From: Haliotis cracherodii
Taxonomy: Eukaryota
Length of the DNA: 64,000 bases
Assembly: GCF_022045235.1 (NCBI RefSeq)
Contig: NW_027266297.1
Location: forward strand, 30,752,001-30,816,000
Reading direction: 5' to 3'
Part shown: one piece after another, positions 1 to 60,083 of the stretch
How positions within the stretch are numbered: position 1 is the first letter of the stretch
Layout of the letters: each line of letters begins with the position of its first letter
Position numbers and translations under genes: made by a program
Notes under the pieces: generated by a model
The model's input: the letters and a program-made list of their open reading frames with translations, nothing else
What the model was told of the DNA's origin: nothing
Database searches by the model: none

Positions 1-495
1 TGCAGGTGCGAGAGGTATGCCGTTGACGTTGTTGCCGAGGGGAACGCTAGATGCCGTCATTCCGGGGGCGACACTGTTCTGAGCTGAAAAAGAACATATT
101 TCCAGTCATTCTTCAAAGGAAAACATTGAATCTATGAATATGTTTGGAATATCTTTAGACATGCATCGGGCTCAAATGCTGTGCAGGTGAGAAAGGAACA
201 CCGTTGCCGAGGGGGACGTTGGACGCTGGGTTTCTAGGGGCGACACTGTTCTGAGCTGAAGCAGTTGTTTTGAAAAAAACCCTGTTATTCTCATATCTAA
301 ATAGAACATAATCAAGGGAAATATTGCGGAAATATGGCCCGAAAACAGCATTAGGAAATACAGGAATTCGTCGTACTAACTCGGCCACATTTTACACAAT
401 GTGCAACCGTCTGTTTTCAGGGGACACCAAAGCCATCACCTACCATGAATAGTGACTGCCACGAAGGCGAAAAGAGCACAAATTGCTGTCTTCAT
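1..495 (-). CDS. Met-rich secreted protein, subfamily A copy A1 (3' part runs off the window start)
   Basis: Exon 2 CDS 495-444 (MKTAICALFAFVAVTIH, acceptor cag 510-508, donor gtaggt) splices in phase 1 to the last exon starting at 83 (ttttcag|ctcag, giving A-QNSVAPGMTASSVPLG...). Non-coding exon 1 ends at 2030 (aag|gtaagg). Near-identical inverted copy of A5. Confidence 0.85.
155..255 (-). other. Duplicated 5' part of the last exon (alternative or pseudo-exon) in intron 2 of A1
   Basis: gcttcag|ctcagaac... encodes QNSVAPRNPASNVPLGNGVPFSPAQHLSPMHV*, a diverged copy of the start of the last exon. Confidence 0.7.
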
Positions 496-774
496 GATTC
501 GTCTTTCCTGCAAGAGATAAACAACAACATTAATGAAAGAAAATACACGAATGAAGACCATTTATGATGTCCCCCGCCGTGTTTTTGCTGGAATATTGCT
601 AAAAGCGGCGTAAAACCATACTCACTCATGCACTCAAACATGTTTACTTCGTCAGTATCCGCGGATACAATATTTACTTCAGCTCCATTCCATTTTCTTT
701 TTCATGAACGTTAATAATTGGGCTTTTTGCCATACGAGCATAAGACAAATCAATAGGAATTCTGAAATTTGAAG

Positions 775-1051
775 TGAGTGAGTTGGGTTTAACGCCGTAT
801 TTAACAGTATTCCAGTCATATAATACGACGTGTCAGCTAAATGTGGGAGGAAAGCCCGAAGTGATGCAGGTCTCAGACGTTTACCACTTCGATGAAACCC
901 ATGAGCACGGGTATGGTGCTGACAAACCTAGAAACATAATCGGGGCGAACCGGGATTCTAACCCACAATCATAGGTTTCTGGCGTGCCCAAGGGACGCAA
1001 CTGTGTATAGCGAATCGTGGTGCCTTGGACGACTAGGCCACCCGTTACCCC
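775..1051 (-). mobile_element. tRNA-derived SINE, family S3 (long head)
   Basis: A-box tggcctagtcg, B-box ggttagaatcc, tail ggcgttaaacccaactcactcac, flanked by direct repeat ctgaaatttgaag (762-774, 1052-1064). Confidence 0.8.
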
Positions 1052-1099
1052 CTGAAATTTGAAGAACATGAAGACATGAAACCATTATCTATAACTTTT

Positions 1100-1935
1100 T
1101 ATGGAGAAAACAACACGTGGAATGCTGGACTTCCTCATAGATAACATCGCAGGCATCGCCATGGGTACCAACTGTGATCCTCTCCTTGCTGATCTGTTTC
1201 TTTGTGTATACGCGGTTTGACAGAATTAAAACAAGGGAATTTGGTCACGGTGAGTTGAGGTGAACTGGGGTTTAACGTCGCTTCCAAGATCATTGCACTT
1301 ATGCACCTGGGTGTGGGTGTGGCTGCTTGTACTAGTCCAGACTGATGCCGATTAATAGTGCTAGCCCACTGAGATACCATGCCGCAGTTTAACATGAATA
1401 CCCCACTCAGACACAGTATACTGACTCCGAGCCGACCAGTCCTTGCCGATCGCCAGACAGGGTAACAACAAATACCATCTTTTAACGTCTTTTGGTATCA
1501 CGCGGCCGGGGATCGAACCCCGGACCTTCCGCTCTCCGGGCGGACTCTATACCACTAGATCACGGGGGCGGTCGAGTTTGGTCAAGACGTTTATATTAAG
1601 CCTTAGTTATATCGATAATTTGATATCTCTCAATAACGTCAAATAGCTAATTCCCTTCTACCGATTTACCAACCTGACATATAAGAATCAACCTCACCTA
1701 TTTCATATGTAGATCTATGCATAAAGAGTCACAAAACATTTGAGCACATTACCAACTTTGACGCATCAGAGACTAAAATGATGCCCAATGTACATCCCCA
1801 TTTTGATTTTTACTATTTGTTCCCGGTTTGCTTTAGATGAACAATTCACTTGCCTTTGTATGTGTTTGTGATGGGTGCCACGAGTGGGAGAGGATACGCT
1901 AACCTTTTTACGACCTCCTGGTATTAAACGCATTG
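1100..1935 (+). mobile_element. Decayed Penelope-like (Naiad-type) RT fragment interrupted by a SINE, in intron 1 of A1
   Basis: GIAMGTNCDPLLADLFL (RT motif B) at ~1150-1200 and SYIDNLISLNN (YIDD-like) at ~1605-1640; many stops and deletions. Confidence 0.65.
1258..1573 (-). mobile_element. tRNA-derived SINE, family S4 (MESC/Meta-core-like)
   Basis: Pol III A/B boxes, then ataccaaaagacgttaaaagatggta...ggactggtcggctcggagtcagtata core and cgacgttaaacccc tail; inverted twin at 33151-33485. Confidence 0.75.
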
Positions 1936-2029
1936 TTAACGGAGCACTACACACCACACACTCCCATCGTATACTTAGCCTATACATATCCGAAACTATA
2001 TAAGATACAAAAAGTTGACGTTTCCTTAC

Positions 2030-2100
2030 CTTGTGCTGCTTCTGAACCAGAGCTGAAGCCAGGGATGATGTGTTGAATGTCCAGCACTGAGCCTTTTATA
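2030..2100 (-). promoter_or_regulatory. TATA box and non-coding exon 1 of A1
   Basis: TATAAAA at 2100-2094, ~65 nt upstream of donor aag|gtaagg; conserved in all five A copies. Confidence 0.7.
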
Positions 2101-3062
2101 TCTCCTGGTGTGGCAGTGGGTCGTGGTTTCCTGTCAGCAATACATTACCCTTCTACATGATGTGCATGACGTAAGTTGTCAAGTGACCATGTCTTCATGT
2201 CTTGGTTATCACATATTTCTTGTTGCATGTCGGTATAAACATGTCGCAACGATCATCTTAAACTTACTACGAAGTTCATATTGAATAACAGTCTTCTCTT
2301 GATTAACCAGATAGTCCAGAATACCCAACTCTAATCTTATATGACATATTATCTCATATAGTTTCTTTAAGGATGATTCAAATGCGTCTTACAAAATAAA
2401 ATCTAAACGAACATTTAATCGGTAGTTTCTAAACACCAATGTTTGAATATAAATATGAGCTTATGTTTATTTGTCTGGGTTTCCTCGAATTTATGAATAT
2501 GCATTACATATTTTGTATACACAAAAACTTCCTCGGACTCGACAAGGTACATAACATTGACAGTATCTGTGTGTGCCTGGTATAATTCTTGTCAAGTTAG
2601 ATAAATATGATGATATATTTCTAAAATTGTTTTTGTATTTAATAATGATTCAGAATTGAATCTCTCAAAGGGGATTCGGTTCTTGCAAATTGACATTCCT
2701 AGCGTAATTCAAGCCTTTCAGTTTTGTTACGTATATCAAAAGAAAAAGTAGTGATTAAACAGGGCCAATTTCTCAGTTTTATACACCAAAATGAGTGAAT
2801 GAGTTTGGTTTTACGCTGCTTTTAGCAATAGTCCAGCAATATCAAGAGATTCGAACCCGTGTCTTCGGCTTGACCAACGACCGCTTTAACCACAAAGCTT
2901 CACCTCCGCCCCGTTTCAAACGAGATACTTATCACAACGTAGGACACTTACAGAAAGTAGACACCTAGGCATGGAGCACATTCCCATTGTACTTGGACAG
3001 GCTCCGCGAATCCCAGGTTTCTATGTTTACCCGCTTATGGAGTAAGTTACCAAGTCACAAAT

Positions 3063-3228
3063 AGGGGCGGTCGGGTAGCCTACTGGGTAAAGCGTTCGCT
3101 CGTCATGCCGAAGACCCGGGTTCGATTCCCGACATGGGTACAATCTGTGAAGCCCATTTACGGTGTCCCCCGCCGTGATATTGCTGGAATATTGCTAAAA
3201 GCGGCGTAAAACCATAATCACTCACTCT
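3063..3228 (+). mobile_element. tRNA-derived SINE, family S1 (~165 bp, (ACTC)n tail)
   Basis: ggggcggtcgggtagcc...gggttcgattccc head, gatattgctggaatattgctaaaagcggcgtaaaacc tail; more than 20 copies in the window. Confidence 0.85.
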
Positions 3229-5043: not shown

Positions 5044-5199
5044 AATGTGATTCGTGTCTTAAGGTTCATGAATGTGTCCCTTACATATTGTATCGATGGA
5101 CAGTCTACCCTTACTATGAGAGAAACGGCACCAAGCAAAGGCCATGAGTCTTTTATCCACTCCTATCTTTAGGAAAATAACTATTATTACGAATATAGC

Positions 5200-7785: not shown

Positions 7786-8523
7786 TTACATCATCTCGCT
7801 TCCAAGAAACATCATGGTCATAGGGTCGAAGCCTCGTCCACCTCTCTGGTTGCGATTGTTCATGAGAGCCATCATGGGCCACATGTTGTCGGCGCCGTTC
7901 ATCATGGCGAAAGGGAGCATCATATTGTTGGACTGCCTTGGGTTCATCATCATGCTGTACATGGCCATCCTGCGCCCGTTGTCACCCCCCATCATAAAAG
8001 GGAGATAGTTCATGGGGGACTGGGCAGCGTTGTTGGCGTGTTGATTGTTGGTGGCAGCCGTCGGGTGGATGTTATTAAAGACATTACTGGCATGGGACAA
8101 GAGAGCGCCTGGCATCGGGCTCGGATGTTGTGCAGGTGCGAGTGATATGCCGTTGACGTTGTTGCCGAGTGGAATGCTAGATGCTGTCATTCCGGGGGCG
8201 ACACTATTCTGAGCTGAAAAAGAACATATTTCCAATCATATTTCATTTAGAATACTTCAAAAGAAAACATTGAATACTGTAAAAATAAGTTTGAAACATG
8301 CTTGGACATGCATATAATTGATAAAATCTTCGCCTACAGAGTAATAATAAAAATAATTTTATCATTATTCGCTGAGGGGCAAGGACCCTGAGCTGATGAT
8401 GACCCTAACCAGCCTGACTGTACCAGAATCACCCAAACCCTCTTTTCTGCATTTTTTTATTTTAATCTCTACATAATAGCAACAATAATAATAATTATGC
8501 TACTACTACTACTACTACTACTG

Positions 8524-8554: not shown

Positions 8555-8665
8555 TTCTACTAAAGTACTGCCGATGTGACGTTAAATATTAATTCACTCA
8601 CTAAACTACTTACCATGAATGGTGACTGCCACGAAGGCGAAAATGACACAAACTACTGCTTTCAT
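7786..8665 (-). CDS. Met-rich secreted protein, subfamily A copy A2 (159 aa)
   Basis: Exons 8665-8614 (MKAVVCVIFAFVAVTIH, donor gtaagt) + 8213-7786 (ttttcag|ctc...TAA) = 480 nt in frame. Hydrophobic signal peptide, Met-rich C-terminus. Exon 1 ends at 8985. Confidence 0.9.
8500..8562. repeat. (TAC)n microsatellite, (GTA)n on the gene strand, in intron 2 of A2
   Basis: Visible trinucleotide run. Confidence 0.9.
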
Positions 8666-8984: not shown

Positions 8985-9055
8985 CTTGTGCTGCTTCTGA
9001 ACCAGAGCTGAAGCCAGGGATGATGTGCTGAATATCCGGCACTGGGCATTTTATA
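8985..9055 (-). promoter_or_regulatory. TATA box and exon 1 of A2
   Basis: TATAAAA at 9055-9049; donor aag|gtaaca at 8985. Confidence 0.7.
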
Positions 9056-9587
9056 TCCCCTGGTGTGGCAGTGGGTCGTGGTATTCCGTCAGCAATACAT
9101 TACCCTTCTACATGATGTGCATGATGTAAGTTGTCAAGTGACCATGTCTTCATGACTTGGTTATCACATAATTCTTGTTTTATGTCCGTCAAGTGACCTT
9201 GTCCGTGGTTATCACATATGTCTTGCCGTATACCCTGATGATATGTTGCATGCATCAGTTTAAATCTACACAGCAGTTTTGAATAATAACTTCCTATGGA
9301 ATAACTCTAGATCGTTCCACGTCCGAGCTGCCATATCTTTTAACGTCGCTATCAATGATTGAATATATAATAATATAATAATCATGTTAAGTTTTATTTG
9401 CATAAGAGTTCACTCGAGAGCAATTACTTACAAATAGTTAATTGTTGCGTTGCATCAATTGTACATATATTCGTCTTAATCTGTCTACGATGCGCCAACG
9501 TTAAAATTTGGTTTAGGAACCTGATGTCCAACAACTTGTCAGAGGGGTACACAGAGTACGTGGTCTAGACTTCCAGTAGTCGCACTT

Positions 9588-11310: not shown

Positions 11311-11610
11311 GATGTTTCTTGGAGGCGAGATGATGTAAACACGACTCTCTTATATAGATTTATCCATTTCATGTCACCTATTTATTGATGTATGAACAAG
11401 CTCCCCAACTTTGACTGACCGAGAATTTAACGTCACCTTTTTATTGATATATGAACGACAACTGGCAATGTTTTCCTTCTAGAAATGATGTAATAAACAT
11501 GCTTTGAAATGATGAAAACCTTTTGTACCACTTTATTAATATAATGAAATATAAAATGTCAATGCAATAGAAAAACTAGTCTTGATTATTCGTCGAAACA
11601 GATTCTATTG
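11311..11610 (+). pseudogene. 3'-only remnant of a subfamily A gene (last 8 codons MFLGGEMM* plus 3' UTR)
   Basis: gatgtttcttggaggcgagatgatgtaa (stop 11336-11338) followed by the A-type 3' UTR; no upstream gene sequence, abuts a Penelope 3' fragment. Confidence 0.85.
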
Positions 11611-12949: not shown

Positions 12950-13360
12950 TCCAACAGTCAACTTTCCCTTCATGTCGAGCAATATTTCGGCAGCTGCAGC
13001 CTTTGGTGTTTACATTTCGCAACTTTTGAGATACAATCGAACATGCTATTTCTACCAACATTTCGAAGAGCGTCCTACACCTCTTGCTCAGAAGTTGTTT
13101 GATCAAGGTTACAACATTCAAGGCCTCAGGAAAGCTTTCATAAAATTTTATGGTAGACATGTGGAGGACATTTCCAAATTTGACGCATCTGTGACAAAAA
13201 TGATGCCTGATGCAAGTCCCAATTTTGACTTGTACGGTATGTTCCCATGTTTTTGGTGAACAACTGACTTGCCTCTGCATGTGTTAGTGACAGGTTCCTC
13301 GATGGGCAGGGTACGCTCACCTTTTCGCGAACACCTGGAATCATCACTATTCACATGCGC
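12950..13360 (+). mobile_element. Naiad-like Penelope 3' fragment
   Basis: ORF 12972-13259 (GVYISQLLRYNRTC...KFYGRH); copies at 20150-20560 and 26695-27110. Confidence 0.7.
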
Positions 13361-17146: not shown

Positions 17147-17217
17147 TATAAAAGGCCCAGTGCTGGACATTCAACACATCATCCCTGGCTTCAGCTCTGG
17201 TTCAGAAGCAGCACAAG
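17147..17217 (+). promoter_or_regulatory. TATA box and exon 1 of A3
   Basis: TATAAAA 17147-17153; donor aag|gtaagg after 17217. Confidence 0.7.
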
Positions 17218-17245: not shown

Positions 17246-17407
17246 AGTGAGTGAGTGAGTGAGTTTGGTTTTACGCCAATATTCCAGCAATATCACGGCG
17301 GGGGACACCAGAAATGGGCTTCACACATTGTACCCATGTCGGGATTCGAACCAGGGTCTTCGGCGTGACGAGCGAACGCTTTAACCAGTAGGCTACCCGA
17401 CCGCCCC
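17246..17407 (-). mobile_element. S1 SINE in intron 1 of A3 (shared with A4 at 24196-24368, absent in A2)
   Basis: Direct repeat ttgtrtcata on both sides. Confidence 0.85.
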
Positions 17408-17708: not shown

Positions 17709-17815
17709 ATGAAAGCAGTAGTTTGTGTCATTTTCACCTTTGTGGCAGTCACCATTCATGGTAAGTAGTTTAGTGAGTGAGTGAGTTAATATTTAACGTC
17801 ACATCGGCAGTACTT

Positions 17816-17881: not shown

Positions 17882-18617
17882 CAGCAGCAGCAGTAGTAGT
17901 AGCATAATTATTATTTTTGTTGTTATTATGTAGAGATTAAAATAATAAAATGCAGCAAAGAGGGTTTGGGTGATTCTGGCACAGTCAGGCTGGTTAGGGT
18001 CATCATCAGCTCAGGGTCCTTGCCCCCTCAGCGAATTATAATAAAATTATTATTATAATTACTCTGTAGACGAAGATTTTATCAATTATATGCATGTCCA
18101 AGCATGTTTCAAACTTATTTTTACAGTATTCAATGTTTTCTTTTGAAGTATTCTAAATAAAATATGATTGGAAATATGTTCTTTTTCAGCTCAGAATAGT
18201 GTCGCCCCCGGAATGACAGCATCTAGCGTTCCCCTCGGCAACAACGTCAACGGCATACCACTCGCACCTGCACAACATACGAGCCTGATGCCAGGCGCTC
18301 TCTTGTCCCATGCCAGTAATGTCTTCAATAACAACCACCTGACGGCTGCCACCAACAATCAACACGCCAACAACGCTGCTCAGTCCCCCATGAACTATCT
18401 CCCTTTTATGATGGGGGGTGACAACGGGCGCAGGATGGCCATGTACAGCATGATGATGAACCCAAGGCAGTCCAACAATATGATGCTCCCTTTCGCCATG
18501 ATGAACGGCGCCGACAACATGTGGCCCATGATGGCTCTCATGAACAATCGCAACCAGAGAGGTGGACGAGGCTTCGACCCTATGACCATGATGTTTCTTG
18601 GAAGCGAGATGATGTAA
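17709..18617 (+). CDS. Met-rich secreted protein, subfamily A copy A3 (159 aa)
   Basis: Exons 17709-17760 (MKAVVCVIFTFVAVTIH, donor gtaagt) + 18190-18617; canonical splice sites, in frame. Confidence 0.9.
17816..17902. repeat. (GTA)n/(GCA)n microsatellite in intron 2 of A3
   Basis: Visible run. Confidence 0.95.
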
Positions 18618-19305
18618 ACACGACTCTCTTATATTGTTTATCCATTTCATGTCACCTATTTATTGATATATGACCTAACTACCCAACTATGACCGACCAT
18701 GAATTTAGCGTCACCTTTTTATTGATTTATGAACGACAACTGGCAATGTTTTCGTTCGATAAATGATGTGATAAACATGCTTTCGAATAATGAAAACATA
18801 TTGTACCACTTTATTAATATAATGAAATATAAAATGTCAATGCACTAGAATAACTAGTCTTGATTATTCGTCGAAACAGATTCTGTTGGACGTAAAACAC
18901 AAAATGGTGGTGAAAATTCTATGAATGGATCACTGAAACTCACTGATGAGGTTTTGCGAAAAGGGTAAGCATGTCTTGTCCTACCGGCAGGAACCGCCAC
19001 TCACACAATTTAAATAAATAATTGTTTATTTTCTGACACCGCACAACACCGCACAACAGTTCCCTTGCCATGTGACGGCGGCCTGTAAACAAACCAGACA
19101 ATCAAGTGATCGATGAACCAGAAGATCTAGCGACATGATAGTGCATTTACCGAACTCCGTTGAAACTAATAAACACGATATTTTAATTTTGTATTACGTC
19201 TGTTGCATGTGTACAAGTGCAGAGATTCAGAAAGTCAGCTTTTCTTCATCGTCCAGTTGACGGCACAACAAAAAGTTCTGTGTCATGCGTGATGTAGAAT
19301 ATTAT

Positions 19306-19645: not shown

Positions 19646-21727
19646 CATTTTGAGGTATTAAATGTTCTGTTTAGTTTATGGATCCGCCGACTTTAAAAAT
19701 CGAAAATTCTGCAACGAATATACATGTTATCAATATGATAAAGGTTAAAATCGTTTTGCCATTAATGACATTTAAATGCGGCTGTCATATTTTAGATTTA
19801 TACTGTCTGTAGGGTCCCAAACCAGGCCAAGATTTTGTTTTTGTACCTACCGATCCAAATCAAACTTTAACATGAATTTTAAAAGAAAATCCAATACTAT
19901 GCATTTTATTTGTTCATTTTTTTCCGACCTACCGACCAAGTATTTCACAATCAACATCCGTAAAAAAGGAGTCTGACCTACCAATAAAGTAGTGTCGTTC
20001 TCGAGGTCAGTGCACCGAACATGTATTGTACCAAAGTTCAAAGATGCCTGGTATATTATTGACTGACGTAGTGCTGTGGTCGCTTTGAGGAACTTGAACT
20101 TGCTTTTATTTTAGAACTAGTCCTGAGATTGTGATAGTGAGTATAACTTTCCAACAGTCAACTTTCCCTTCATGTCGAGCAATGTTCCGGCAGCTCCAGC
20201 CTTTGGTGTTTACATTTCGCAATTTTTTAGATACAATCGAACATGCTATTTCTACCTACATTTCGAAGAGCGTCCTACACCTCTTGCTCAGAAGTTGTTT
20301 GATCAAGGTTACAACATTCAAGGCCTCAGGAAAGCTTTCATAAAGTTTTATGGTAGACATGTGGAGGACATTTCCAAATTTGACGCACCAGTGACAAAAA
20401 TGATGCCTGATGCAATTCCAAATTTTGACTTGTACGGTATGTTCCCATGTTTTTGGTGAACAACTGACTTGCCTCTGCATGTGTTTGTGACAGGTGCTTC
20501 GGTGGGGCAGGGTACGCTCACCTTTTCGCGAACACCTGGAATCATCACTATTCACATGCGCATGATATAGTCGGAATTGTACAATCGACTCCGCTTTAAG
20601 AAGAGATTTCTTTTCGACATGGAAAGGGTTTTCTCGCTTTATTTATATGTAATAATGTCATTGGGACAAGGTCTGCGTCAAAAATATTTTACTCTTTTAC
20701 ACCTAAGCCAATCTGCTTCTCATTCATGAAGTGACAGCCGCTGACATAACTTTTCTAAGCATATCGTGAGAATAAGGTTTCGTGTTTTGCCTACGAAGAT
20801 TTCATACAGCACATACAACTCTTGCTTAGAAATTCTTTGATCAGGGTTACAACCTTCAAGTCCTCAGTAAAGCCTTCAAAAGGTTTTATGGTAGACATGT
20901 GAAGGACATGTACCATATGTTCACGGTTGTTTTTTCAGGTGCACATTTGGCTTGCCTCTGCTTTGGTTTGTGGCTGTTGTCACCGGTGGAGCAGGACATG
21001 AAATGGCGAACACTTTACCACTAGGTTTCCTCAACGCTATATTCGTAGTAAAAGTTATTTTCCTAAAGATAGGAGTGGATAAAAGACTCATGGCCTTTGC
21101 TTGGTGCCGTTTCTCTCATAATAAGGATACACTGTCAATGGATACAATATGTAATGGACACATTCATGAACCTTAAGACACGAATCACATTAGTGAGTGA
21201 GTGAGTGTGGTTTTATCGCCGCTTTTAGCAATATTCCACCAATATCAAGGCGGGGAAAGCAGAAATGGGCTTCACGTATTGTACCAATGTCGGGAATCGA
21301 ACTCGGGTCTTCGGCGTGACGAGCGTACGCTTTTACCTCTCGGCTACCCGACCGCACCCCGAATCACTGTTAAGTCACACAACGTTTTATGGAAACGGGA
21401 GAGTATTTCCTGACATGAGCAAATGTTTAAAGAAAAAAGGGATACCAATTACTGCTAATGATAAATTGTCACAATAATTACAGAGGGTGTGGTACTTAGA
21501 TATTAGATTATTTTGCCGTTATTTTTTTTTAAATGCCAAATATATTATAAATATTGAAAAAGGGAAAGAAACTGCAATTTCAAAATATGTATTTCTGTTG
21601 CAACAAATATGCAGAGCAGTGGATACATTGAGAAGAGGTGTCTAGATCAAAACCTTATCTGAAGCTGTAGTACTATGAGTGGTTACGCTGGAACCATCGA
21701 ATAGCTATAGCCATCCTCGATTATCAG

Positions 21728-24095: not shown

Positions 24096-24166
24096 TATAA
24101 AAGGCCCAGTGCTGGACATTCAACACATCATCCCTGGCTTCAGCTCTGGTTCAGAAGCAGCACAAG
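24096..24166 (+). promoter_or_regulatory. TATA box and exon 1 of A4
   Basis: TATAAAA 24096-24102; donor after 24166. Confidence 0.7.
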
Positions 24167-24668: not shown

Positions 24669-24775
24669 ATGAAAGCAGTAGTTTGTGTCATTTTCACCTT
24701 TGTGGCAGTCACCATTCATGGTAAGTAGTTTAGTGAGTGAGTGAGTTAATATTTAACGTCACATCGGCAGTACTT

Positions 24776-24835: not shown

Positions 24836-25564
24836 CAGCAGTAGTAGTAGCATAATTATTATTTTTGTTGTTATTATGTAGAGATTAAAATAATAAAATG
24901 CAGAAAAGAGGGTTTGGGTGATTCTGGCACAGTCAGGCTGGTTAGGGTCATCATCAGCTCAGGGTCCTTGCCACCTCAGCGAATTATAATAAAATTATTA
25001 TTATAATTACTCTGTAGACGAAGATTTTATCAATTATATGCATGTCCAAGCATGTTTCAAACTTATTTTTACAGTATTCAATGTTTTCTTTTGAAGTATT
25101 CTAAATAAAATATGATGGAAATATGTTCTTTTTCAGCTCAGAACAGTGTCGCCCCCGGAATGACAGCATCTAGCGTTCCCCTCGGCAACAACGTCAACGG
25201 CATATCACTCGCACCTGCACAACATCCGAGCCCGATGCCAGGCGCTCTCTTGTCCCATGCCAGTAATGTCTTCAATAACAACCACCTGACGGCTGCCACC
25301 AACAATCAACACGCCAACAACGCTGCCCAGTCCCCCATGAACTATCTCCCTTTTATGATGGGGGGTGACAACGGGCGCAGGATGGCCATGTACAGCATGA
25401 TGATGAACCCAAGGCAGTCCAACAATATGATGCTCCCTTTCGCCATGATGAACGGCGCCGACAACATGTGGCCCATGATGGCTCTCATGAACAATCGCAA
25501 CCAGAGAGGTGGACGAGGCTTCGACCCTATGACCATGATGTTTCTTGGAAGCGAGATGATGTAA
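24669..25564 (+). CDS. Met-rich secreted protein, subfamily A copy A4 (159 aa)
   Basis: Exons 24669-24720 + 25137-25564, canonical phase-1 intron containing (GTA)n at ~24776-24850. Confidence 0.9.
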
Positions 25565-28500
25565 ACACGACTCTCTTATATTGATTTATCCATTTCATGT
25601 CACCTATTTATTGATATATGAACTAACTACCCAACTATGACCGACCATGAATTTAGCGTCACCTTTTTATTGATTTATGAACGACAACTGGCAATGTTTT
25701 CGTTCGATAAATGATGTGATAAACATGCTTTCGAATAATGGAAACCTTTTGTACCACTTTATTAATATAATGAAATATAAAATGTCAATGCAATAGAATA
25801 ACTAGTCTTGATTATTCGTCGAAACAGATTCTATTGGACGTAAAACACAAAATGGTGGTGAAAATTATATGAATGGATCACTGAAACTCACTGATGAGGT
25901 TTTGCGAAAAGGGTAAGCATGTCTTGTCCTACCGGTAGCAACCGTCACTCACACAATTTAAATAAATAATTGTTTATTTTCTGACACCGCACAACACCGC
26001 ACAACAGTTCCCCTGCCATGTGACGGCGGCCTGTAAACAAACCAGACAATCAAGTGATCGATGAACCAGAAGATCTAGCGACATGATAGTGCATTTACCG
26101 AACTCCGTTGAAACTAATAAACACGATATTTCGGCGTGACAAGCGAACGATTTAACCACTAGGCTACTCGACCTCCCCATTTTGAGGTATTAAATGTTCT
26201 GTTTAGTTTATGGATCCGCCGACTTTAAAAATCGAAAATTCTGAAACAAATATACATGTAATCAATATGATAAAGGTTTCTACGGCGACGGTTAAAATCG
26301 CTTTGCCATTAATGACATTTAAATGCGGCTGTCATATTTTAGATTTATACTGTCAGTAAGGTCCCAAACCTGGCCAAGATTTTGTTTTTGTACCTACCGA
26401 TCCAAATCAAACTTTAACATGAATTTTAAAAGAAAATCCAATACTATGCATTTTATTTGTTCATTTTTTTCCGACCTACCGACCAAGTATTTCACAATCA
26501 GCATCCGTAAAAAAGGAGTCTGACCTACCAATAAAGTAGTGTCGTTCTCGAGGTCAGTGCACCGAACATGTATTGTACCAAAGTTCAAAGATGCCTGGTA
26601 TATTATTGACTGACGTAGTGCTGTGGTCGCTTTGAGGAACTTGAACTTGCTTTTATTTTAGAACTAGTCCTGAGATTGTGATAGTGAGTATAACTTTCCA
26701 ACAGTCAACTTTCCCTTCATGTCGAGCAATGTTCCGGCAGCTCCAGCCTTTGGTGTTTACATTTCGCAATTTTTTAGATACAATCGAACATGCTATTTCT
26801 ACCAACATTTCGAAGAGCGTCCTACACCTCTTGCTCAGAAGTTGTCTGATCAAGGTTACAACATTCAAGGCCTCAGGAAAGCTTTCATAAAGTTTTATGG
26901 TAGACATGTGGAGGACATTTCCAAATTTGACGCATCAGTGACAGAAATGATGCCTGATGCAATTCCAAATTTTGACTTGTACGGTATGTTCCCATGTTTT
27001 GGGGTGAACAACATGCCTCTGCATGTGTTAGTGACAGGTGCTTCGGTGGGGCAGGGTACGCTCACCTTTTCGCGAACACCTGGAATCATCACTATTCACA
27101 TGCCCATGATATAGTCGGAATTGTACAATCGACTCCGCTTTAAGAAGAGATTTCTTTTCGACATGGAAAGGGTTTTGTCGCTTTATTTATATGTAATAAT
27201 GTCATTGGGACAAGGTCTGCGTCAAAAATATTTTTCTCTTTTACACCTAAGCCAATCTGCTTCTCATTCATGAAGTGACAGCCGCTGACATAACTTTTCT
27301 ACGCATATCGATCGTGAGAATAAGGTTTCGTGTTTTGCCTACGAAGATTCCATACAGCACATACAACTCTTGCTCGGAAGTTCTTTGATCAGGGTTACAA
27401 CCTTCAAGTCCTCAGTAAAGCCTTCAAAAGGTTTTATGGTAGACATGTGAAGGACATGTACCATATGTTCACGGTTGTTTTTTCAGGTGCACATTTGACT
27501 TGCCTTTGCATGTGTTTATGGGTGTTGTCACCGATGGGGCAGGACATGAAATGGCGAACACTTTACCACTAGGTTTCTTCAACCGTATTTTTTTGTAATA
27601 ATAGTTATTTTCCTAAAGATAAGAATGAATAAAAGACTCATGGGCTTGGTGCTATTGATATCCCCGTTTCTCTCATATTAAGGGTACACTGTCCATGGAT
27701 ACAATATGTAAGGGACACATTCATGAACCTTAAGACACGAATCACATTAGTGAGTGAGTGAGTGAGTGTGGTTTTATCGCCGCTTTTAGCAATATTCGAC
27801 CAATATCAAGGCGAGGGAAACCAGAAATGGGCTTCACGTATTGTACCCATGTCAGGAATCGAACCCGGGTCTTCGGCGTGACGAGCGTACGCTGTTACCT
27901 CTCGGCTACCCGACCGCACCACGAATCACTGTTAAGTCACACAACGTTTTATGGAAACGGGAATGTATTTCCTGACATGAGGAAATGTTTAAAGAAAAAA
28001 AGGGATACCAATTACTGCTAATGATAAATTGTCACAATAATTACAGAGGGTGTGGTACTTAGATATTAGATTATTTTGCCATTATTTTTTTTGAAATGCC
28101 CAGTTGTCAAATATATTATAAATATTGAAAAAGGGAAAGAAACTGCAATTTCAAAATATGTATTTCTGTTGCAACAAATATGCAGAGCAGCGGATACATT
28201 GAGAAGAGGTGTCTAGATCAAAACCTTATCTGAAGCTACAAACAAACCATTTATGAGGTCAAACCAGGTAGCTTAAAGCCGTTTAATGCATAATAGATCA
28301 AAGGACATAACCATTTCGCAATAATTTGTTTTGATGTATAATGTTTATAATCATTATTTATATGTAGTAGTTTAGTTTTAGTTACTTTTTATTACAATTG
28401 ATATAATAAACAAGAACAGTTACGGCTTATTAATTAATATCCAAGCGACTAGGGTAAATATTTCATTGCCAGTAAAAGTATTTAACAAAAGAGATTCTGA

Positions 28501-29991
28501 TATTCCTGATCATGACTAGCTAATTAACAGGATCAAAGGACCGAGGTGTGTGCCTCACATATGTGTGTGACTAAGAGAGTGAGTGAGTGAGTGTGGTTTT
28601 ACGCCGCTTTTAGCAATATTCCAGCAATATCACGGCGGGGGACACCAGAAATGGGCTTCACACATTGTCCCATGTCGGGAATCGAACCCGGGTCTTCGGC
28701 ATGACGAGAGAACGCTTTACCCAGTAGGCTATCCGACCGCCCCTATTTGTGACTTAGTAAGCTACTCCATAAGCGGGTAAACATAGAAACCTGGGATTCG
28801 CGGAGCCTGGCCAAGTACAATGGGAATGTGCTTCACGCCTAGGGGTCTACTTTCTGTAAGTGTCCTACGTTGTGATAAGTATCTCGTTTGAAACGGGGCG
28901 GAGGTAAAGCTTTGTGGTTAAAGCGGTCGTTGGTCAAGCCGAAGACACGGGTTCGAATCTCCAAATGGGTAAAATGTCTGAAGCCCATTTCTGGTGTCCC
29001 CCGCCTTGATATTGCTGGAATATTGCTAAAAGCAGCGTAAAACCAAACTCATTCACTCACTTTGGTGTATGAAACTGAGAAATTGGCCCTGTTTAATCAC
29101 TAAATTTTCTTTTGATATACGTAACAAAACTGAAAGGCTTGAATTACGCTAGGAATGACAATTTGCAAGAACCGAATCCCCTTTGAGAGATTCAATTCTG
29201 AATCATTATTAAATACAAAAACAATTTTAGAAATATATCATCATATTTATCTAACTTGACAAGAATAATACCAGGCACACACAGATACTGTCAATGTTAT
29301 GTACCTTGTTCAGTCCGAGGAGGTTTTTGTGTATACAAAATATGTAATGCATATTCATTAAATTCGAGGAAACCCAGACAAATAAACATAAGCTCATATT
29401 TATATTCAAACATTGGTGTTTACAAACTACCGATTAAAAATTCGTTTAGATTTTATGTTGTACGACGCATTTGAGTCATCCTTAAAGAAATAATAATAAA
29501 TGAGATGATATGTCAAATAAGATTAGAGTTGGGTATTCTGGACTTATACGAACATGGAGTACATGTAACTTCTTTGATAGGCATTTAGAAGTTGGAGTTC
29601 TAAGTAAGGATAAGAAATTTATGGATGAACAACTTCTTTATTACAGTCACAACCCTCGCCACCAACCTCAAAGACTTCAAGATCAGGAAACTACAAGAAG
29701 CCATCAACATCAAAAGACTTCAGCCCTCAATCAACCGTGGCCAAGGCTATTACATACCCCTGGCCTACCATCAACTCATAAAAGACCCAAAAGACCCCAA
29801 TCAGCCATAATCCCGTTGTTTACATTACTGGCTTCATCCTTTGTTCATGGCACTGACTTCACCCATGGTCATCATCACTGCCCTTGTGTGTACACAACAG
29901 GCTTCTCTACTCCAGCATAACAATATCTACTCTATTGTATAAACATTGCCTCCTACGTGTATATATACTTGCTTACCGCACTCTGTAAATC

Positions 29992-32238
29992 TAAAGCTTT
30001 CGACATGGTATGGCACGACGGGCTAATACAAAAACTTCAAAAAATAGGACTCAAAGGTCAGATAATAAACTACATCCAGGACTTCCTAAACAATCGTAAA
30101 ATAACCGTGGGTATAGACCAAACACTATCGGACCAATGTCCCCTAGAAAATGGCACTCCCCAGGGCAGTATCCTCAGCCCCTCCCTCTTCAATATAATGA
30201 TAAACGATCTATTCGAGGGCCTATCCCCTAAAGTAAACACATCGAAATTCGCGGATGACGGAGCCCTCTGAATCCGCACTAAAAGCATTAAAATGGCCCA
30301 AAATTTACTCCAAAAATCTCTTCATAAAATACAACAATGGGCTGACAAATGGGGCTTCTCCCTTAACTCAGAAAAAACAACAGGAATAGTATTAAAACAT
30401 AAAAACATGAAACCCGCCTCCCCAATCCTCCAGCTAAACAACCAAACAATCAAATTTCAAAAACAAACCAAATTCTTAGGACTTATTTTCGATGAACATC
30501 TCACCTGGGATGCTCACATCCAAAACCTAACAACTAAATGCAGTAAAGACCTAAACACCCAAAGATGCCTAACTGGCTCTAACTGGGGAGCCTCCAAAGA
30601 TACCCTCCTCTCTCTCTACATATCACTAATTAGATCAAAACTAGACTACGGCTGCGCCAAATACAACACCCTAAACAACTCTCTATCTAAAAAACTTGAC
30701 TCAATACAATATCAGGCCCTCAAACTCATTACACGCACCCAACATGGCACCTCCTACACTTCACTTCAGGCCTTAACAGGAGAAATGCCACTAAGTCTAC
30801 GCAGGGAACAGCTAAGCTTAAATTTCTGGGCCGCGTCCCAATCAAACCCTCTCATCCAAAACTTAATAAACCAAAATATCAGCCCCAAAAACCAAGCTCT
30901 AGCTCGTAAACACCCCTTACTTCCCAAAGAATAACAAACTACCTCAATGAACACCAAATTAAAAATCTTAAACAAAACTGCAAACAATCAAATATCTTCA
31001 CCCCTAAACTTAAAATACCCAAAATAGACACAACACTAGCTAGCCAAATAAATAAACAAACCGACCCAAACATAGCTAAAACCACCACACTAGCATACAT
31101 ACACGAAAATTGGCCAAATTGGTGTCACATTTACAAGGACGGATCCTCAGATCCGACCTCCAAATACACAGGTTTCGGAATCCATACCACACAACCAACT
31201 AAAAGCACACAATCCTTCCGACTCCCAAACAACCAATCAATATTCACGGCAGAACTAATGGGCATGGCCTCAGCCCTCCATAATCAAAAACCACAAAAAA
31301 ATCCTAATACTTACCGACTCCCTAAGTGGACTGCAAGCCCTCCAAAACAAAAATACCAAACACCGACCTAAATTAATAAATCAAATACTTAAAAGCTCCA
31401 ACGACCGAACTAAGGCAGGCAAACAAATAACCTTCTTGTGGATACCCGCCCACGTAGGAATATACGGTAATGAAAACGCCGATAAAGCAGCTAAACTATC
31501 CCTCAAAATCCCAGAAATAAGCTTAAACTTACCAATCTCAAAATCAGAAATTAAAAGCGTAAACAAGCAAAAAATCACCAAAAAATGGCATAACCTTTAT
31601 CTAAACTCAAATAGCCCAATAAAAAAAGTACTCAGCAAACCACTAACCAAACCAAAACTTCTCCATCCATCAAAAATAATCGACAGAGTAATCACTAAAC
31701 TCCAAACAGGACACACCAACCTAAATAACCATCTAAAAAAAATTAAAAAACATACTACAGGTAACTGCCCACACTGCAAACAACTAGAAACCCCAGAACA
31801 CGCACTCATCCACTGCACACACTACCTAACACATCGAACCGCATTACAAACCACCCTCAATCTAAACAAGGCTCCCACTCTAGAAGCAATACTAAACCCA
31901 CAAAATAAACTAGAAAAATTCAAGGCCTTAGGCGTATTCTTAATCAAAACGGAACTAATAAAACGCATTTAAAAACACTATAATCTACCAAATCAAAATT
32001 ACATAAACAAACACACATCCACCATACCCAGTTCTCCTCCCCAACCCCATCGGCATCTATTCCAAATCTCAAAATTCCAAAATTCTATATAAGCAACCCC
32101 TAAAGGCCCCTCTTGGATTGCACACACCACTTTCGCCCCTTTCGGAAACACATTAAATGGCCTGGCCGGGCCCGTGTGCGAAATACGCATCAGTCGGAAA
32201 GCGCACGTTAAATATCCAAAGTAAGTAAGTAAGTAAGT
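29992..32238 (+). mobile_element. 5'-truncated non-LTR retrotransposon (RT + RNase H + CCHC; I/Nimb-group-like), inactivated
   Basis: KAFDMVWH, GTPQGSILSPSLF, FADD, KFLGLIFD, WIPAHVGIYGNENAD, CPHC...H...C; premature stops and frameshifts; (TAAG)n tail; TSD actctgtaaatc at 29980-29991 and 32239-32250. Confidence 0.92.
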
Positions 32239-32629: not shown

Positions 32630-32695
32630 TATAAAAGGCCCAGTGCTGGACATTCAACACATCATCCCTGGCTTCAGGTTCAGAAGCAGCACAAG
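32630..32695 (+). promoter_or_regulatory. TATA box and exon 1 of A5
   Basis: TATAAAA 32630-32636; donor aag|gtaagg after 32695. Confidence 0.7.
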
Positions 32696-34249: not shown

Positions 34250-35118
34250 ATGAAGACAGCAATTTGTGTTCTTTTCGCCTTCGTGGCAGTCACTATTCAT
34301 GGTAGGTGATGACAGCTTCAAAAATATATTTTCGTAATGCTTTGGTGTCCCCTGAAAACAAACGACTACACATTGCATAAAATGTGGCCGAGTTAGTACG
34401 ACGAATTCCTGTATTTCCTAATGCTGTTTTCAGGCCATATTTCCGCAATATTTCCCTTGATTATGTTCTATTTAGATATAAGAATAACAGTTCTTTTTTT
34501 AAAAACAACTGCTTCAGCTCAGAATAGTGTCGTCCCCGGCAACACAGCGTCCAACGTCCCCCTCGGCAACGGTGTTCCTTTCTCACCTGTACAGCATCCG
34601 AGCCCGATGCATGTCTAAAGATATTCCAAACATATTTCATAGATTCAATGTTTTCCTTTGAAGAATGACTGGAAATATGTTCTTTTTCAGCTCAGAACAG
34701 TGTCGCCCCCGGAATGACGGCATCTAGCGTTCCCCTCGGCAACAACGTCAACGGCATACCACTCGCACCTGCACAACATCCGAGCCCGATGCCAGGCGCT
34801 CTCTTGTCCCATGCCAGTAATGTCTTCAATAACAACCACCTGACGGCTGCCACCAACAATCAACACGCCAACAACGCTGCCCAGTCCCCCATGAACTATC
34901 TCCCTTTTATGATGGGGGGTGACAACGGGCGCAGGATGGCCATGTACAGCATGATGATGAACCCAAGGCAGTCCAACAATATGATGCTCCCTTTCGCCAT
35001 GATGAACGGCGTCGACAACATGTGGCCCATGATGGCTCTCATGAACAATCGCAACCAGAGAGGTGGACGAGGCTTCGACCCAATGACGATGATGTTTCTT
35101 GGAAGCGAGATGATGTAA
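34250..35118 (+). CDS. Met-rich secreted protein, subfamily A copy A5 (159 aa)
   Basis: Exons 34250-34301 (MKTAICVLFAFVAVTIH, donor gtaggt) + 34691-35118; AATAAA at 35236-35241. Confidence 0.88.
34518..34618 (+). other. Duplicated 5' part of the last exon (alternative or pseudo-exon) in A5
   Basis: gcttcag|ctcag... gives QNSVVPGNTASNVPLGNGVPFSPVQHPSPMHV*. Confidence 0.7.
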
Positions 35119-51930: not shown

Positions 51931-52018
51931 TATAAACTGCAGCTGAGCTGGTGATAGTATCATTGGCTTCATTAGTTACAGTAGCACTCCAGTTCGGTAC
52001 AGGGACAATCCAAGCCAG
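51931..52018 (+). promoter_or_regulatory. TATA box and non-coding exon 1 of B2
   Basis: TATAAA 51931-51936; donor cag|gtaaat after 52018; block nearly identical in B3. Confidence 0.65.
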
Positions 52019-52216: not shown

Positions 52217-53151
52217 ATGAAGATCATATGCCTTTGCATAGCTCTCTTTGGCGCTGCAGCCAATGGTAAGTAAATACTCGCGTATACATATATACATTAC
52301 AAATATTAACCGCATATCTTTATCTGTGCGAATTAATCAATTGAATAATTATATATAAGTACAGTTTGTGTTGCGAGTACAGTTCATGAATGTTCTTAAA
52401 GATAAGACACTGTGCACAATTCTGTTGCAATATCATAACTCTCATCATTCTTTTCCAGCTCAAAGTACTGCACACGCTTATAACAACATCAACCAGTTTA
52501 GTTTCCCTCCAATGAACAGCCATCACAGTCAAGGCAACACTGTATCCACGGCATATGGTTACCATGGTAACAGTATGTCCACCAAGAACGGTAACCAAGG
52601 TAATTCTGTTTCCAAAGACAACGGTTACAAAGACAACAAGTGATAGTGGTAGTTGTAGTGGTAGTAATAGTAGAAGTAATGGTAGTAGTAGTAGCAGTAG
52701 CAGTTAAACGATATAAGGAAAGTAATATTAGTGTAAGTAAACGATAACTCACATGAAACATCATTTGCTTGCAGCTCAAGCACCTGCACCAGCTTATCCC
52801 TCGACGAATACCAACGCTTACCCAATGTCAAACAACTACGCCTACCAAGCGAATGGTTACAGTGGTTACCAAAGCAGCGCCGCGTCCACTGCAACTGGTT
52901 ACAAGAGCAACACCAACAACATCAACTCTTACATGCTTCCTATGATGATGGGTATGGATCAAGGAAGTCAACTGGCAACTCTCGGAATGATGATGAACTC
53001 GAGGCAGGGCAACAACATGCTCCCCTTCTACATGATGAACCAAGGGTATGAGAACATGCTGCCCATGATGGCCTTCATGAACCGCGGCACCCAGAGAGGC
53101 CAGATGATGAACCCCTTCATGATGATGACTCTTCATGAAGCGATGAACTAA
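52217..53151 (+). CDS. Met-rich secreted protein, subfamily B copy B2 (188 aa)
   Basis: Exons 52217-52265 (MKIICLCIALFGAAAN) + 52459-52599 (QSTAHAY...KNGNQ, donor caag|gtaatt) + 52775-53151 = 567 nt in frame; AATAAA 53304-53309. Confidence 0.88.
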
Positions 53152-56865: not shown

Positions 56866-58038
56866 GAACGTGTTGGTGAAGACAAATGGGATTTAACCTC
56901 TCTGTTCAAGATTATTTTACTTTTAAAGCACATACAATCCATTGAATAGTGGTCTAAAGTAGGTATCCGGGTTCAAGGTGATGCATATTTTATGCATATA
57001 ACAAACTATTTAATGAAAATGTCTGAACATAGTTTCAACAATTCATATTGATGTACATTTCGGAAAAGGTGAATTAGTGAGTGAGTTTGGTTTGTTGACG
57101 CTTTTAACAATATAGCAGCAATATCACAGTGGATTTTAGAACATTAACATTTTAAAATTTCTTTTGGTTAAAGAATTGTACAAGATGTAAACAGCATTGT
57201 CAATAATTTTGTATTCGATTTGAAGGAATATATTAGCACTCAAACTATTTAAAGATTCCATCAGTTTTATGTTCAGAAATATATACCCGTCTTTATAAGT
57301 AGTCTGTTTTAAGTTTTATTAAACCTTAGAAAGCCTATATGAGTCCATATTTTTCGAACCAAAATCCTTTTGGCGTAAAAGGCAAACTAGGGCTAAAAAG
57401 TATATAAAGGGATATCTGAAAATCAGTGAAGTCATCAAGTGTTTGCGAACTTATGGAAATGAATTATGTCTCATATCACATTTAAGACAACTCATATATT
57501 ATGTACTTGTTTAAAACATTTAAAGTTTTAAATATGTTTCTACAATATAGCCTGAAACAGCATGTACTTCGAATCCTCATCCATAAGAATAACATGTTTA
57601 TTGCAGTTGCTTATAGCGTAACACAACAAAAGAACCCTTTACAAACACATTGGCTTTATTTTACAAATAAAAAAATACTTCAAAGTGATAGACCTTTTAT
57701 TTAAGACTTGCAAACAACCGTCAACGAACTTAAGGGAAAGCTTCCAATGACATTCTGAATTCCCTAAATTACTACAATCATGGTAGGTCGAATCCCACAA
57801 ACATATTAATTAGGAACATCTGAGTATTTGTTAAACAATTAAATGTAATCGCGACATGAGTAGTACATGGATATCAATCACCCATAATAGCACTCGTGTC
57901 AACCTTGTATTATTACAAAACAGCGTGAAGCGCCGACTGACACCTTGTAGTGTATTACGTGTGGTCAATTTGACTCGTAGTTAATACCATCTTAGGCAAG
58001 TTGTGTTGCACTTATTGCTGATTCCGTAACGTATGGTT

Positions 58039-58126
58039 TATAAACTACAGCTGAGCTGGTGATAGTATCATTGGCTTCATTAGTTACAGTAGCACTCTAG
58101 TTCGATACAGGGACAATCCAAGCCAG
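58039..58126 (+). promoter_or_regulatory. TATA box and exon 1 of B3
   Basis: TATAAA 58039-58044; donor after 58126. Confidence 0.65.
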
Positions 58127-58457
58127 GTAAATTCTTTGGTTTTATCAGCTATGATGATACATACATATTTATAAATTGGCTAGTTTTATTGATATTTGTG
58201 AATGTTAGACTATTACTTCTGATATAGCTGTGTTGTATTCATGAACGTAAAACTATTACAATTAATATAGTTTAGAGAATGCATGTTAAGTGTGAAGATT
58301 AGCCAATATAAATGTTTGAGAAGTGCCGTGTATTTAACTCGAACGTTCATTTGTATTTTCCAGCATCTTAGTACAAAGCAGTACCAAAACGTTTACAGAC
58401 GAATTTATGACAGTAAATCAGAATTCTAAAATTTACAAAGTATATTTTTCAGACAAA

Positions 58458-59568
58458 ATGAAGATCATATGCCTCTGTATTGCTCTCTTTGGCGCTGCAG
58501 CCAATGGTAAGTAAATATTCGTGGATACATCTATGCATTACAAATATAACCTACATATCTTTATCTGTGCGAATTAATCAATTGCACAATATGCACTCAC
58601 CACCAAAAGATACGCAAATTCCATACATGTTGGTTAATACATGAAGGCTTACTCATATTTAAGAGATAGTAGATGTGTTCGATCCACAAAGGAACATACT
58701 GTTATGTTAAGTGAACCGATGCTTATGAACGCATAACATGTGACGTCATAGAAACATGTCTCGAGAAGCACCATTTGTCTCGTGCAGGATTAGCGTGTCA
58801 AGTTTGGAAATCACGTGCAGCATATCTTGAAAGCAATGAAGACACTCTGTGGTAACACTTGACTGATTGTTAGTTTAACATTAATTGGTGTACATTCTTA
58901 ACGAACATACTTCTCTATATGTTTCTTTGGTTCGTGTTTCTTTTATCGGTGAGTATATACACGTATCGTTTGTGTTGCGAATACAGTTCATGAATATTCT
59001 CAAAGATAAGACACTGTGCACAGTTCTGTTGCAATATCATAACTCTCATCATTCTTTTCCAGCTCAAAGTACTGCACATGCTTATAACAACGTCAACCAG
59101 TTTAGTTTCCCTCCAACGAACAGCCATCACAGTCAAGGCAACACTGTATCCCCGATATATGGTTACCATGGTAACAGTTTATCCACCAACAACGGTAACC
59201 AAGGTAATTCAGTTTACAATAACACAGCAGTTGTAAAGGCAGCTAGTGATAGTTGTAGTAGTTGTAGTTGTGGTAGTGGTAGCGGGAGTGGTTGTTGTTG
59301 TTGTTTATTTAACACCGCACTCAACAATATTCCAGCTATATGTCGGCGGTCTGTAAATAATCGATTTTGGACCAGACGAACCAGTGATTGACACCATGGG
59401 CATCGATCTACGAAAATGGGATACGATGACATGCATCAAAAGAGTCAGCGAGTCTGAACACCCGATCGCATTAGTCGCCTCTTTCGACAAGCAGAGTCGC
59501 CTCTTACGGCAAGGGTTGCTGAAGACCTATTCTAACCCGGATTTTAACGTGTCTCATTGGTAGTAGAT

Positions 59569-59608
<40 letters not shown>

Positions 59609-60083
59609 CAGTAGCAGCAGCAGCAGCAGCAGTAACAGTAGCAGATAAATGATATAAGGAAAGTAATATTAGTATAAGTAAACGATAAACATTTTTTTGC
59701 TACCAGCTCAAGCACCTGCACCAGCCTACCCCACGACGAATACCAACGCTTACCCAATGTCAAACAACTACGCCTACCAAGCAAATGGTTACAGTGGTTA
59801 CCAAAGCAGCGCCGCGTCCACTGCAACTGGTTACAAGAGCAACACCAACAACATCAACTCTTACATGCTTCCTATGATGATGGGTATGGATCAAGGAAGT
59901 CAAATGGCAACTCTCGGAATGATGATGAACTCGAGGCAGGGCAACAACATGCTCCCCTTCTACATGATGAACCAAGGGTATGAGAACATGCTACCCATGA
60001 TGGCCTTCATGAACAGCGGCAACCAGAGAGGCCAGAGGATGAACCCCTTCATGATGATGACTCTTCATGAAGCGATGAACTAA
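58458..60083 (+). CDS. Met-rich secreted protein, subfamily B copy B3 (188 aa)
   Basis: Exons 58458-58506 + 59063-59203 + 59707-60083 = 567 nt, all phase-1 GT-AG introns; AATAAA 60236-60241. Confidence 0.88.
58594..58955. mobile_element. ~360-bp Tc1/mariner-like MITE in intron 2 of B3
   Basis: Imperfect TIRs cactcaccaccaaaaga / tcttttatcggtgagta at a TA-rich site; absent in B2. Confidence 0.55.

Follow-up and report, generated by a model that had tools for sequence, protein, structure and literature searches.

We describe a family of cysteine-free, methionine-rich and probably secreted abalone proteins, represented by five genes of type A, three of type B and two relics in a stretch of 64,000 nucleotides (nt) of the Haliotis cracherodii genome (the window; contig NW_027266297.1, here C34, positions 30752001-30816000). 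The genes follow a common plan, in which a TATA box precedes a short non-coding exon, a signal exon of 16-17 codons, a phase-1 intron and a Cys-free last exon, and the encoded proteins measure ~154-220 amino acids (aa). The conserved part of these proteins is a 76-aa C-terminal segment, the Met module, which retains 54-58% identity between the A and B types, while the spacers that precede it are unalignable. On balance, and judging from the sequences themselves, we favor the reading that the family is a dosage-amplified, largely disordered secreted protein that would act through its Met module.

Gene models and splice architecture

The six-frame open reading frame (ORF) list of the window contains seven long ORFs with a very Met-rich tail, to which tblastn added an eighth copy, A1, truncated at the window start, as well as weaker partial matches. 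An earlier note on this DNA, made from its letters alone, had proposed eight gene models and two relics, and this proposal was confirmed by tblastn and blastn, which recovered eight copies of the Met-rich last exon (A1-A5 and B1-B3), and by a check of the exon boundaries. Upstream of every long ORF, a short exon beginning with ATG (49 nt in B, 52 nt in A) encodes Met-Lys and a hydrophobic stretch. The donor of this exon, GT(A/G)AG, falls one base into a codon and the acceptor of the long ORF is CAG; the split codon is G|CT, encoding Ala, and the next codon is CAG or CAA, encoding Gln. A scripted check of all boundaries found phase 1 in A1-A5 and B1-B3, and the arrangement described in the note, in which a signal exon and a phase-1 intron build Ala|Gln, holds in 8/8 window genes. 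Additionally, B2 and B3 carry an extra 141-nt coding exon, and because this exon is in phase 1 at both ends, Ala|Gln is made twice in these two genes. By rule, the signal exon has the characteristics of a signal peptide: its second residue is Lys, its hydrophobic core spans 12-14 residues and the residues at -1 and -3 before Gln are small, those preceding Gln being I-H-A, A-N-A or V-Y-A (motif A-x-A or I-x-A).

The window models coincide with RefSeq models, all named "uncharacterized protein" (Table 1; P0024 corresponds to B2 and P0022 to B3). Searches were run exon by exon, and the full-length forms used here are the database proteins, which start with exactly the predicted signal exon and continue with Ala-Gln. 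Two junctions predicted in the earlier note, 17760/18190 and 52265/52459, are both exact and equal to those of the RefSeq models. The genes are publicly annotated already, as uncharacterized proteins, and the family is well documented; therefore, the novelty of our analysis resides in recognizing this family and the module it carries.

An alignment of the five A upstream regions contains ~190 nearly invariant bases. The A promoters have a TATAAAAG box and, ~30 nt later, a short segment with the 3' end CACAAG|GTAAGG, and the non-coding exon, ~40 nt long, is nearly invariant in 5/5 A copies. Since a CAG acceptor sits 12 nt 5' of the signal-exon ATG, a non-coding exon 1 is the natural reading of this arrangement. 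In B2 and B3, TATAAA and the donor are 97% conserved over 131 nt (B3 58012-58142) versus 78% further upstream. The note had assigned a TATA box and a non-coding exon 1 to all genes, which stands for the nearly invariant A copies, whereas for the B genes we infer the exon from TATA, donor and conservation.

The sole N run of the window lies inside the B1 intron, outside the coding sequence. The B1 last exon begins 21 nt past this gap, whose two flanks agree in strand and are compatible in phase. XP_071119752.1 (P0005, 154 aa = 16 + 1 + 137) joins the two B1 exons that flank the gap, and P0039, the H. rufescens counterpart of the B1 protein, is likewise 154 aa long, which is a mild argument against a hidden middle exon in B1. 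(GTA)n microsatellites are present in the intron before the last exon of B2 and B3, and the left edge of the gap reads GTAGTA. Locus L009, recovered in the search of the H. cracherodii genome, overlaps the gap and has letters in place of the N run.

Composition and conservation of the Met module

Exon composition bears out the earlier description of the mature chain as Cys-free and Met-rich: Cys is absent from the mature-chain exons, Met makes up 16-18% and Asn 14-17% of the last exons, and Asn reaches 17-20% in the 46-aa middle exons. The spacer is rich in Pro, Ala, Asn and His in type A, and in Tyr, Asn, Ser, Gly and Gln in type B. Within the module, (N/Y)(M/L)(L/W)P-x-x-M-M motifs recur, and Pro, Gly, Leu, Asn and Met occupy the invariant positions. 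Compared with A3, H. asinina proteins show 78% identity in the module and 70-71% over the whole last exon. In a low-confidence model, AlphaFold2 placed helices in the signal peptide, in a short part of the spacer and in four short segments of the module.

Among A copies, the ratio of nonsynonymous to synonymous substitution rates (dN/dS) in the module is ~0.1-0.2. Moreover, the module DNA of A2, A3 and A4 shows 0/228 differences, versus 5-9/195 in the spacers, and this identity of module DNA next to differing spacers points to either gene conversion or very strong constraint. On these comparisons, the Met module is under purifying selection and has probably been homogenized by gene conversion. 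We also considered whether the genes could be non-functional low-complexity ORFs carried along by segmental duplication, an explanation to which we give almost no credence. The region is certainly rich in repeats and microsatellites; however, the conservation data contradict such an origin, since the ORFs are intact in 8/8 cases, splice sites and promoters are conserved, the module dN/dS is well below 1, and orthologs are kept in three species while the relics show a pattern of local decay.

Organization and growth of the cluster

A search of the H. cracherodii genome itself (1.18 Gb, 80 contigs) places the window in the middle of a larger cluster. In agreement with the note's claim that the family is amplified, 16 family genes lie on C34 between 30.716 and 30.847 Mb (~130 kb), and three further paralogs lie on another chromosome (C13, 17.145-17.178 Mb); the module profile scores these 19 genomic loci with expectation (E) values of 1e-18 to 1e-34. 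Along C34, the cluster starts with a divergent long member (+) and A0 (+), continues with two B genes followed by A1 and A2 (-), then with A3, A4, A5, B1, B2, B3 and two more B genes (+), and finishes with a long B and a divergent B gene (+).

Self-comparison revealed direct repeats at offsets of 6.5-7.1 kb, together with inverted repeats of 92-97% identity, in which the A1-A2 side matches the A3-A5 side. As read from these repeats, the growth of the cluster is a matter of direct and inverted segmental duplications of ~7 kb. The divergent members L016 and L017 use the same phase-1 acceptor giving Ala|Gln, and the architecture is therefore ancestral to the family. Across signal peptide and spacer, A1 differs from one H. 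rufescens gene at 2/83 residues and from other H. cracherodii copies at 5-12, and module differences average 1.9 within species versus 3.0 between species. This pairing of A1 across species, coupled with the likeness of modules within species, indicates that part of the expansion predates the split between H. cracherodii and H. rufescens and that the module has been partly homogenized. In H. rufescens, cluster look-ups of RefSeq XP models yielded 7 A-type and at least 6 B-type genes.

The introns of A5 and A1 each hold a duplicated pseudo-exon derived from the 5' part of the last exon. Together with the two relics, these pseudo-exons are best read as the products of decay and rearrangement in the cluster, and the B middle exon looks like a successful version of the kind of partial duplication found in the A5 and A1 introns.

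Two sets of family members depart from the common plan in other respects. The C13 paralogs (C13:17145341-17178573; L017 and two others) have a Gly/Met/Pro-rich N-terminal half, a longer Met module and the same Ala|Gln acceptor, and P0011, of 304 aa, is their H. asinina ortholog. In the first A gene of the cluster (L006; P0002, P0029), the acceptor lies 21 nt further upstream and adds seven residues and a second Ala-Gln, a variant also kept in H. rufescens.

Relatives and database standing

The A3 last exon matches H. cracherodii proteins at 98% identity and H. asinina proteins at 70%; these database proteins are 159-166 aa long, and every one is named "uncharacterized protein". No Pfam family was found for any last exon or full-length protein, and the 46-aa middle exon gave two matches far below the Pfam cut-offs; likewise, no PDB sequence matched the module profile at E up to 1. 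The note had not recognized the proteins as a named family, and the uniformly uncharacterized public models, together with the lack of Pfam and PDB matches, are in line with this. In the ESM Atlas, the best score was 0.76, which is not usable.

A HMMER profile search of 1.84 billion representative proteins returned seven matches. Five are abalone-type, including an 87-aa fragment of unknown source with 49% identity to the A4 protein and the Gly/Met-rich, C13-type protein of H. asinina, and the other two are P0012, a Met-repeat protein from a Tara metatranscriptome (E 2.4e-4), and a spurious long protein, the weak non-abalone matches having E values of 2.4e-4 and 4.6e-4. The family thus consists of Haliotis-type sequences, with two weak non-family matches among 1.84 billion representatives, which upholds the earlier claim that it is lineage-specific. 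The C13-type P0011, used as a query, retrieved no named relative, and a literature search by RefSeq locus and protein identifiers and by peptide words retrieved no paper on the family.

A second Tara Met-repeat protein, P0009, came from a word-indexed search. P0009, P0012 and P0014 (Tara Oceans metatranscriptomes/IMG) are made of repeated K(D/E)LLPLMMMNGQ...M(D/N)PxxMMM units, have no Pfam match and score weakly against the module profile, with E values of 2.4e-4 to 2.6e-3.

Transcript-like evidence

Contigs of four public runs, from other species and presumed by guess to be RNA, were compared with A5. In run X1, a 479-nt contig with a depth of 596 lies over the A5 last exon, and in run X5 a 560-nt contig matches exactly from the predicted acceptor (34690/34691) and carries 127 extra letters that are unlike the intron. 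Across the A5 intron, no bin is filled in X1 or X5, while the DNA-like run X15 gives coverage there. The pattern across X1, X5 and X15 agrees weakly with splicing.

Feature coordinates and neighboring sequences

Table 1. Positions of the gene parts, relics and other features of the family in the window.
Feature	Position	Strand	Remarks
A1 last exon, 5' part only	1-83	-	Runs off the window start; whole exon C34:30751659-30752081; P0028
A1 pseudo-exon in intron	163-260		Same kind as in A5
A1 signal exon	444-495	-	17 codons + 1 nt; donor GTAGGT
A1 TATA box (~2100) and short non-coding exon 1 (end 2030)	2030-2107	-	
A2 last exon	7786-8213	-	Mature chain 141 aa + stop; = P0033
A2 signal exon	8614-8665	-	
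A2 TATA box (~9055) and non-coding exon 1 (end 8985)	8985-9062	-	
Relic, 72-bp A-gene 3' end	11311-11382	+	96% to A3 18590-18660; near inverted-duplication center
A3 TATA box (17147) and non-coding exon 1 (end 17217)	17147-17217	+	Donor GTAAGG
A3 signal exon	17709-17760	+	ATG 17709; donor after 17760
A3 last exon	18190-18617	+	Met module 18387-18614; = P0030
A4 TATA box and non-coding exon 1	24096-24166	+	
A4 signal exon	24669-24720	+	
A4 last exon	25137-25564	+	= P0001
A5 TATA box and non-coding exon 1	32630-32695	+	Intron 1 larger by ~1.4 kb of repeats
A5 signal exon	34250-34301	+	Diverged type, common to A1
A5 intron pseudo-exon	34513-34610	+	Copied last-exon 5' part and acceptor, terminated by stop
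A5 last exon	34691-35118	+	= P0032; X5 contig match begins at acceptor
B1 signal exon	44442-44490	+	16 codons + 1 nt
Assembly gap (N) in B1 intron	44767-44905		Left edge GTAGTA
B1 last exon	44927-45342	+	137 aa + stop; = P0005
Relic of B last exon	48778-48947	-	Acceptor and 5' part kept, frame broken, without Met module
(TAC)n beside B relic	48953-49692		
B2 TATAAA (51931) and inferred non-coding exon 1 (end 52018)	51931-52018	+	
B2 signal exon	52217-52265	+	
B2 middle exon	52459-52599	+	141 nt, phase 1 to 1, Asn/Ser/His/Tyr-rich; in P0024
B2 last exon	52775-53151	+	
B3 TATA and inferred non-coding exon 1	58037-58126	+	Approximate
B3 signal exon	58458-58506	+	
B3 middle exon	59063-59203	+	In P0022
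B3 last exon	59707-60083	+	

A satellite with an 81-bp unit (~62 copies, 93% matches) lies between A5 and B1 (35693-40726) and contains a spurious 953-aa ORF, and a broken retroelement lacking long terminal repeats (non-LTR), with RVT_1, an RNase H trace and a GC skew of -0.43, lies between A4 and A5 (29510-31972, +). A repeat of ~170 bp resembling a short interspersed element (SINE), with copies 80-90% alike, occurs at 17246-17407 and at more than 30 other places; it is present in intron 1 of A3 and A4 and missing from A2. Additionally, a recurrent ORF of ~95 aa with the conserved motif ...QKLFDQGY...FYGRH... is found at 12972-13259, 20172-20459, 26719-27114 and 45932-46243 (-). This ORF has no Pfam match and is present in each 7-kb unit as well as outside the cluster (L019:8744-9049), and is probably part of a dispersed repeat.

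Past the last Met-module match, an ORF resembling the B middle exon (L022:3878-4486; C34:30851878-30852486) is probably a relic at the cluster edge. Further on, L024 (C34:30868001-30878000, -) has spectrin-repeat-like ORFs, such that the downstream neighbor resembles a plakin/spectrin-type gene unrelated to the cluster, and the flanking DNA held no other informative neighbor.

Discussion

Because the genes combine a strong conserved TATA promoter with tiny size and many near-identical copies, bulk dosage is a plausible feature of the family, and the proteins may be bulk secretory products of a specialized epithelium or gland. The mature chain would be largely disordered, with the Met module as its working part. 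Within the module, short hydrophobic helices capped by Pro could function as stickers via Met and aromatic contacts, and these stickers might serve either self-association or the binding of a hydrophobic or soft-metal partner. The setting would be an oxidizing extracellular milieu, where Cys would not serve, and the spacers may tune solubility or cross-linking, for which the Tyr residues of type B are candidates.

Several points weigh against this reading. Its support is at the level of sequence, the signal peptide is judged by rule, and the internal periodicity of the module, apparent by eye, is not statistically significant (hhalign self-comparison, E 0.4). The mean predicted local distance difference test (pLDDT) score of 47.9 given by AlphaFold2 may come from the shallow, 14-row alignment rather than from true disorder. 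In addition, no spliced joint is present among the listed matches to the public runs, which are dominated by intron 1 repeats and come from other species and from runs guessed to be RNA, and three runs labeled with the same species contain hardly any words of the exon.

It is also conceivable, if rather improbable, that the family is a soluble protective or binding protein of mucus, gut fluid or hemolymph, whose Cys-free Met clusters would act as oxidant scavengers or as binding sites for soft metals of the Cu(I) type or for hydrophobic ligands. The module has dense MM and MMM clusters, no Cys and few His, and its invariant Pro, Gly and Asn suggest a fold-on-binding module over pure low complexity. 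Ctr1, CusF and SilE/PcoE have extracellular Met motifs that bind Cu(I) or Ag(I), and surface Met can be an oxidant sink; however, the family has no sequence relation to Ctr1, CusF or SilE/PcoE, and the parallel is one of analogy only. We regard as very unlikely that the proteins are precursors of secreted signaling peptides, such as pheromones or hormones, cleaved at basic sites such as GRR. Small secreted proteins with a fast-evolving N-terminus, and with G-R-R inside the A-gene module, would be compatible with this role, but the site is unconserved in the B genes (GRH, GSQ, GSH), and the conserved unit is the whole 76-aa module, with no repeated peptides between dibasic sites.

The shell offers another candidate setting, in which the proteins would be mantle-secreted components of nacre, prismatic layer or periostracum and the module would act on CaCO3 or on the assembly of the matrix. 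Met-rich, Cys-poor, basic secreted proteins without relatives, namely ML6A10, ML8B1 and ML5A7, are present in H. asinina nacre, from which three Met-rich (7-11%) proteins without relatives have been described (Marie et al. 2010, PMC2989941). ML6A10 has an outline like that of the family: its signal peptide ends at A|Q, its spacer is of Pro/Ala type and its tail is Met-rich with terminal MM. Moreover, quinone tanning in periostracum suits Tyr-rich chains, and the Tyr-rich B spacers would fit a process of this type.

Nevertheless, motif words of the family were absent from the shell data: 0/12 words (A, B and C13 type) occur in the H. laevigata shell-proteome supplements (6.2 million characters), 0/4 in the H. 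asinina shell-protein table and 0/6 in H. asinina mantle expressed sequence tag supplements, negatives that are limited by the incompleteness of several supplements and by the difficulty of identifying heavily Met-oxidized peptides. Operationally, shell matrix proteins are recognized by mass spectrometry (MS) of cleaned shell extracts. The negatives above remove the positive support for a shell role. A degenerate pattern of 30 nt located the H. cracherodii ortholog of ML6A10 at only one site, which lies on another chromosome (L018:1315-1578, -, contig C9), and ML6A10 was rejected as a relative, with non-significant similarity (BLASTP E 0.045 over 20 aa, hhalign probability 1.8%). The Gly/Met-rich nacre protein idb_54497, considered as a possible C13 paralog, was also rejected, as it is a different, Cys-containing protein. 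We therefore mildly disfavor the shell reading and consider it unlikely. The earlier note had proposed a secreted structural material with shell as a candidate; of this, the lineage-specific, amplified nature of the family and its signal-peptide-like exon stand, whereas the structural and shell parts are unsupported, given the absent motif words and the non-significant match to ML6A10.

As a speculation that we hold to be improbable, the Met module could be an undescribed extracellular self-assembly domain, with Met and aromatic stickers on Pro-capped mini-helices, perhaps switched by Met oxidation or Cu(I), that builds an abalone-specific biomaterial with Tyr- or Pro-rich spacers. Such a biomaterial could be, for example, periostracum, a secretion for adhesion or lubrication, or the matrix of the radula or egg coat. 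The weakly similar plankton proteins with LLPLMMM-type repeats hint at a wider use of the principle.

Lineage-specific secreted low-complexity proteins are a well-known trait of molluscs, in which they make up shells, glues and mucus. The family described here is large, still duplicating and lineage-specific, and its sharply conserved Met-rich module is unlike anything described. Should its tissue and material be found, it could represent a new sequence principle, with cohesion based on Met as opposed to Cys, His or DOPA (3,4-dihydroxyphenylalanine). It would then also be a convenient system for following the growth of a gene cluster that is accompanied by gene conversion and exon duplication.

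Comparison with known systems

ML6A10 (ML6A10/MRP) resembles the family in the Ala|Gln end of its signal peptide, its Pro/Ala N-terminal spacer, its Met-rich C-terminal half ending in MM, its basic isoelectric point and its lack of relatives. In contrast to the 16-18% Met of the family, ML6A10 has 11% Met and Asn is not dominant; furthermore, ML6A10, unlike the family, is proven in nacre by MS. Two other extracellular mollusc proteins with unusually high Met are abductin, the elastomer of the bivalve hinge ligament, and MRNP34, a Met-rich nacre protein of Pinctada. The Gly/Met/Pro-rich N-terminal halves of the C13 paralogs recall an abductin-like composition. However, both proteins are built from short tandem repeats, while the Met module has no significant internal repeat, and no relation to either appeared in the profile search.

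Outside the molluscs, bacterial SilE/PcoE and the Ctr1 ectodomain provide examples of Cys-free, Met-rich, disordered extracellular segments, which can become helical when they bind Cu(I) or Ag(I). They come from unrelated organisms and have unrelated sequences, and their His-Met spacing is absent in the abalone family, such that any likeness would be one of functional analogy only. Finally, the family shares with the lineage-specific, secreted low-complexity genes of the mollusc mantle secretome (Jackson et al. 2006, PMC1676022; Aguilera et al. 2017, PMC5400390) a taxon-restricted distribution, secretion, biased composition, fast evolution and frequent tandem duplication, but differs from them in having a well-conserved 76-aa module and not only repeats.

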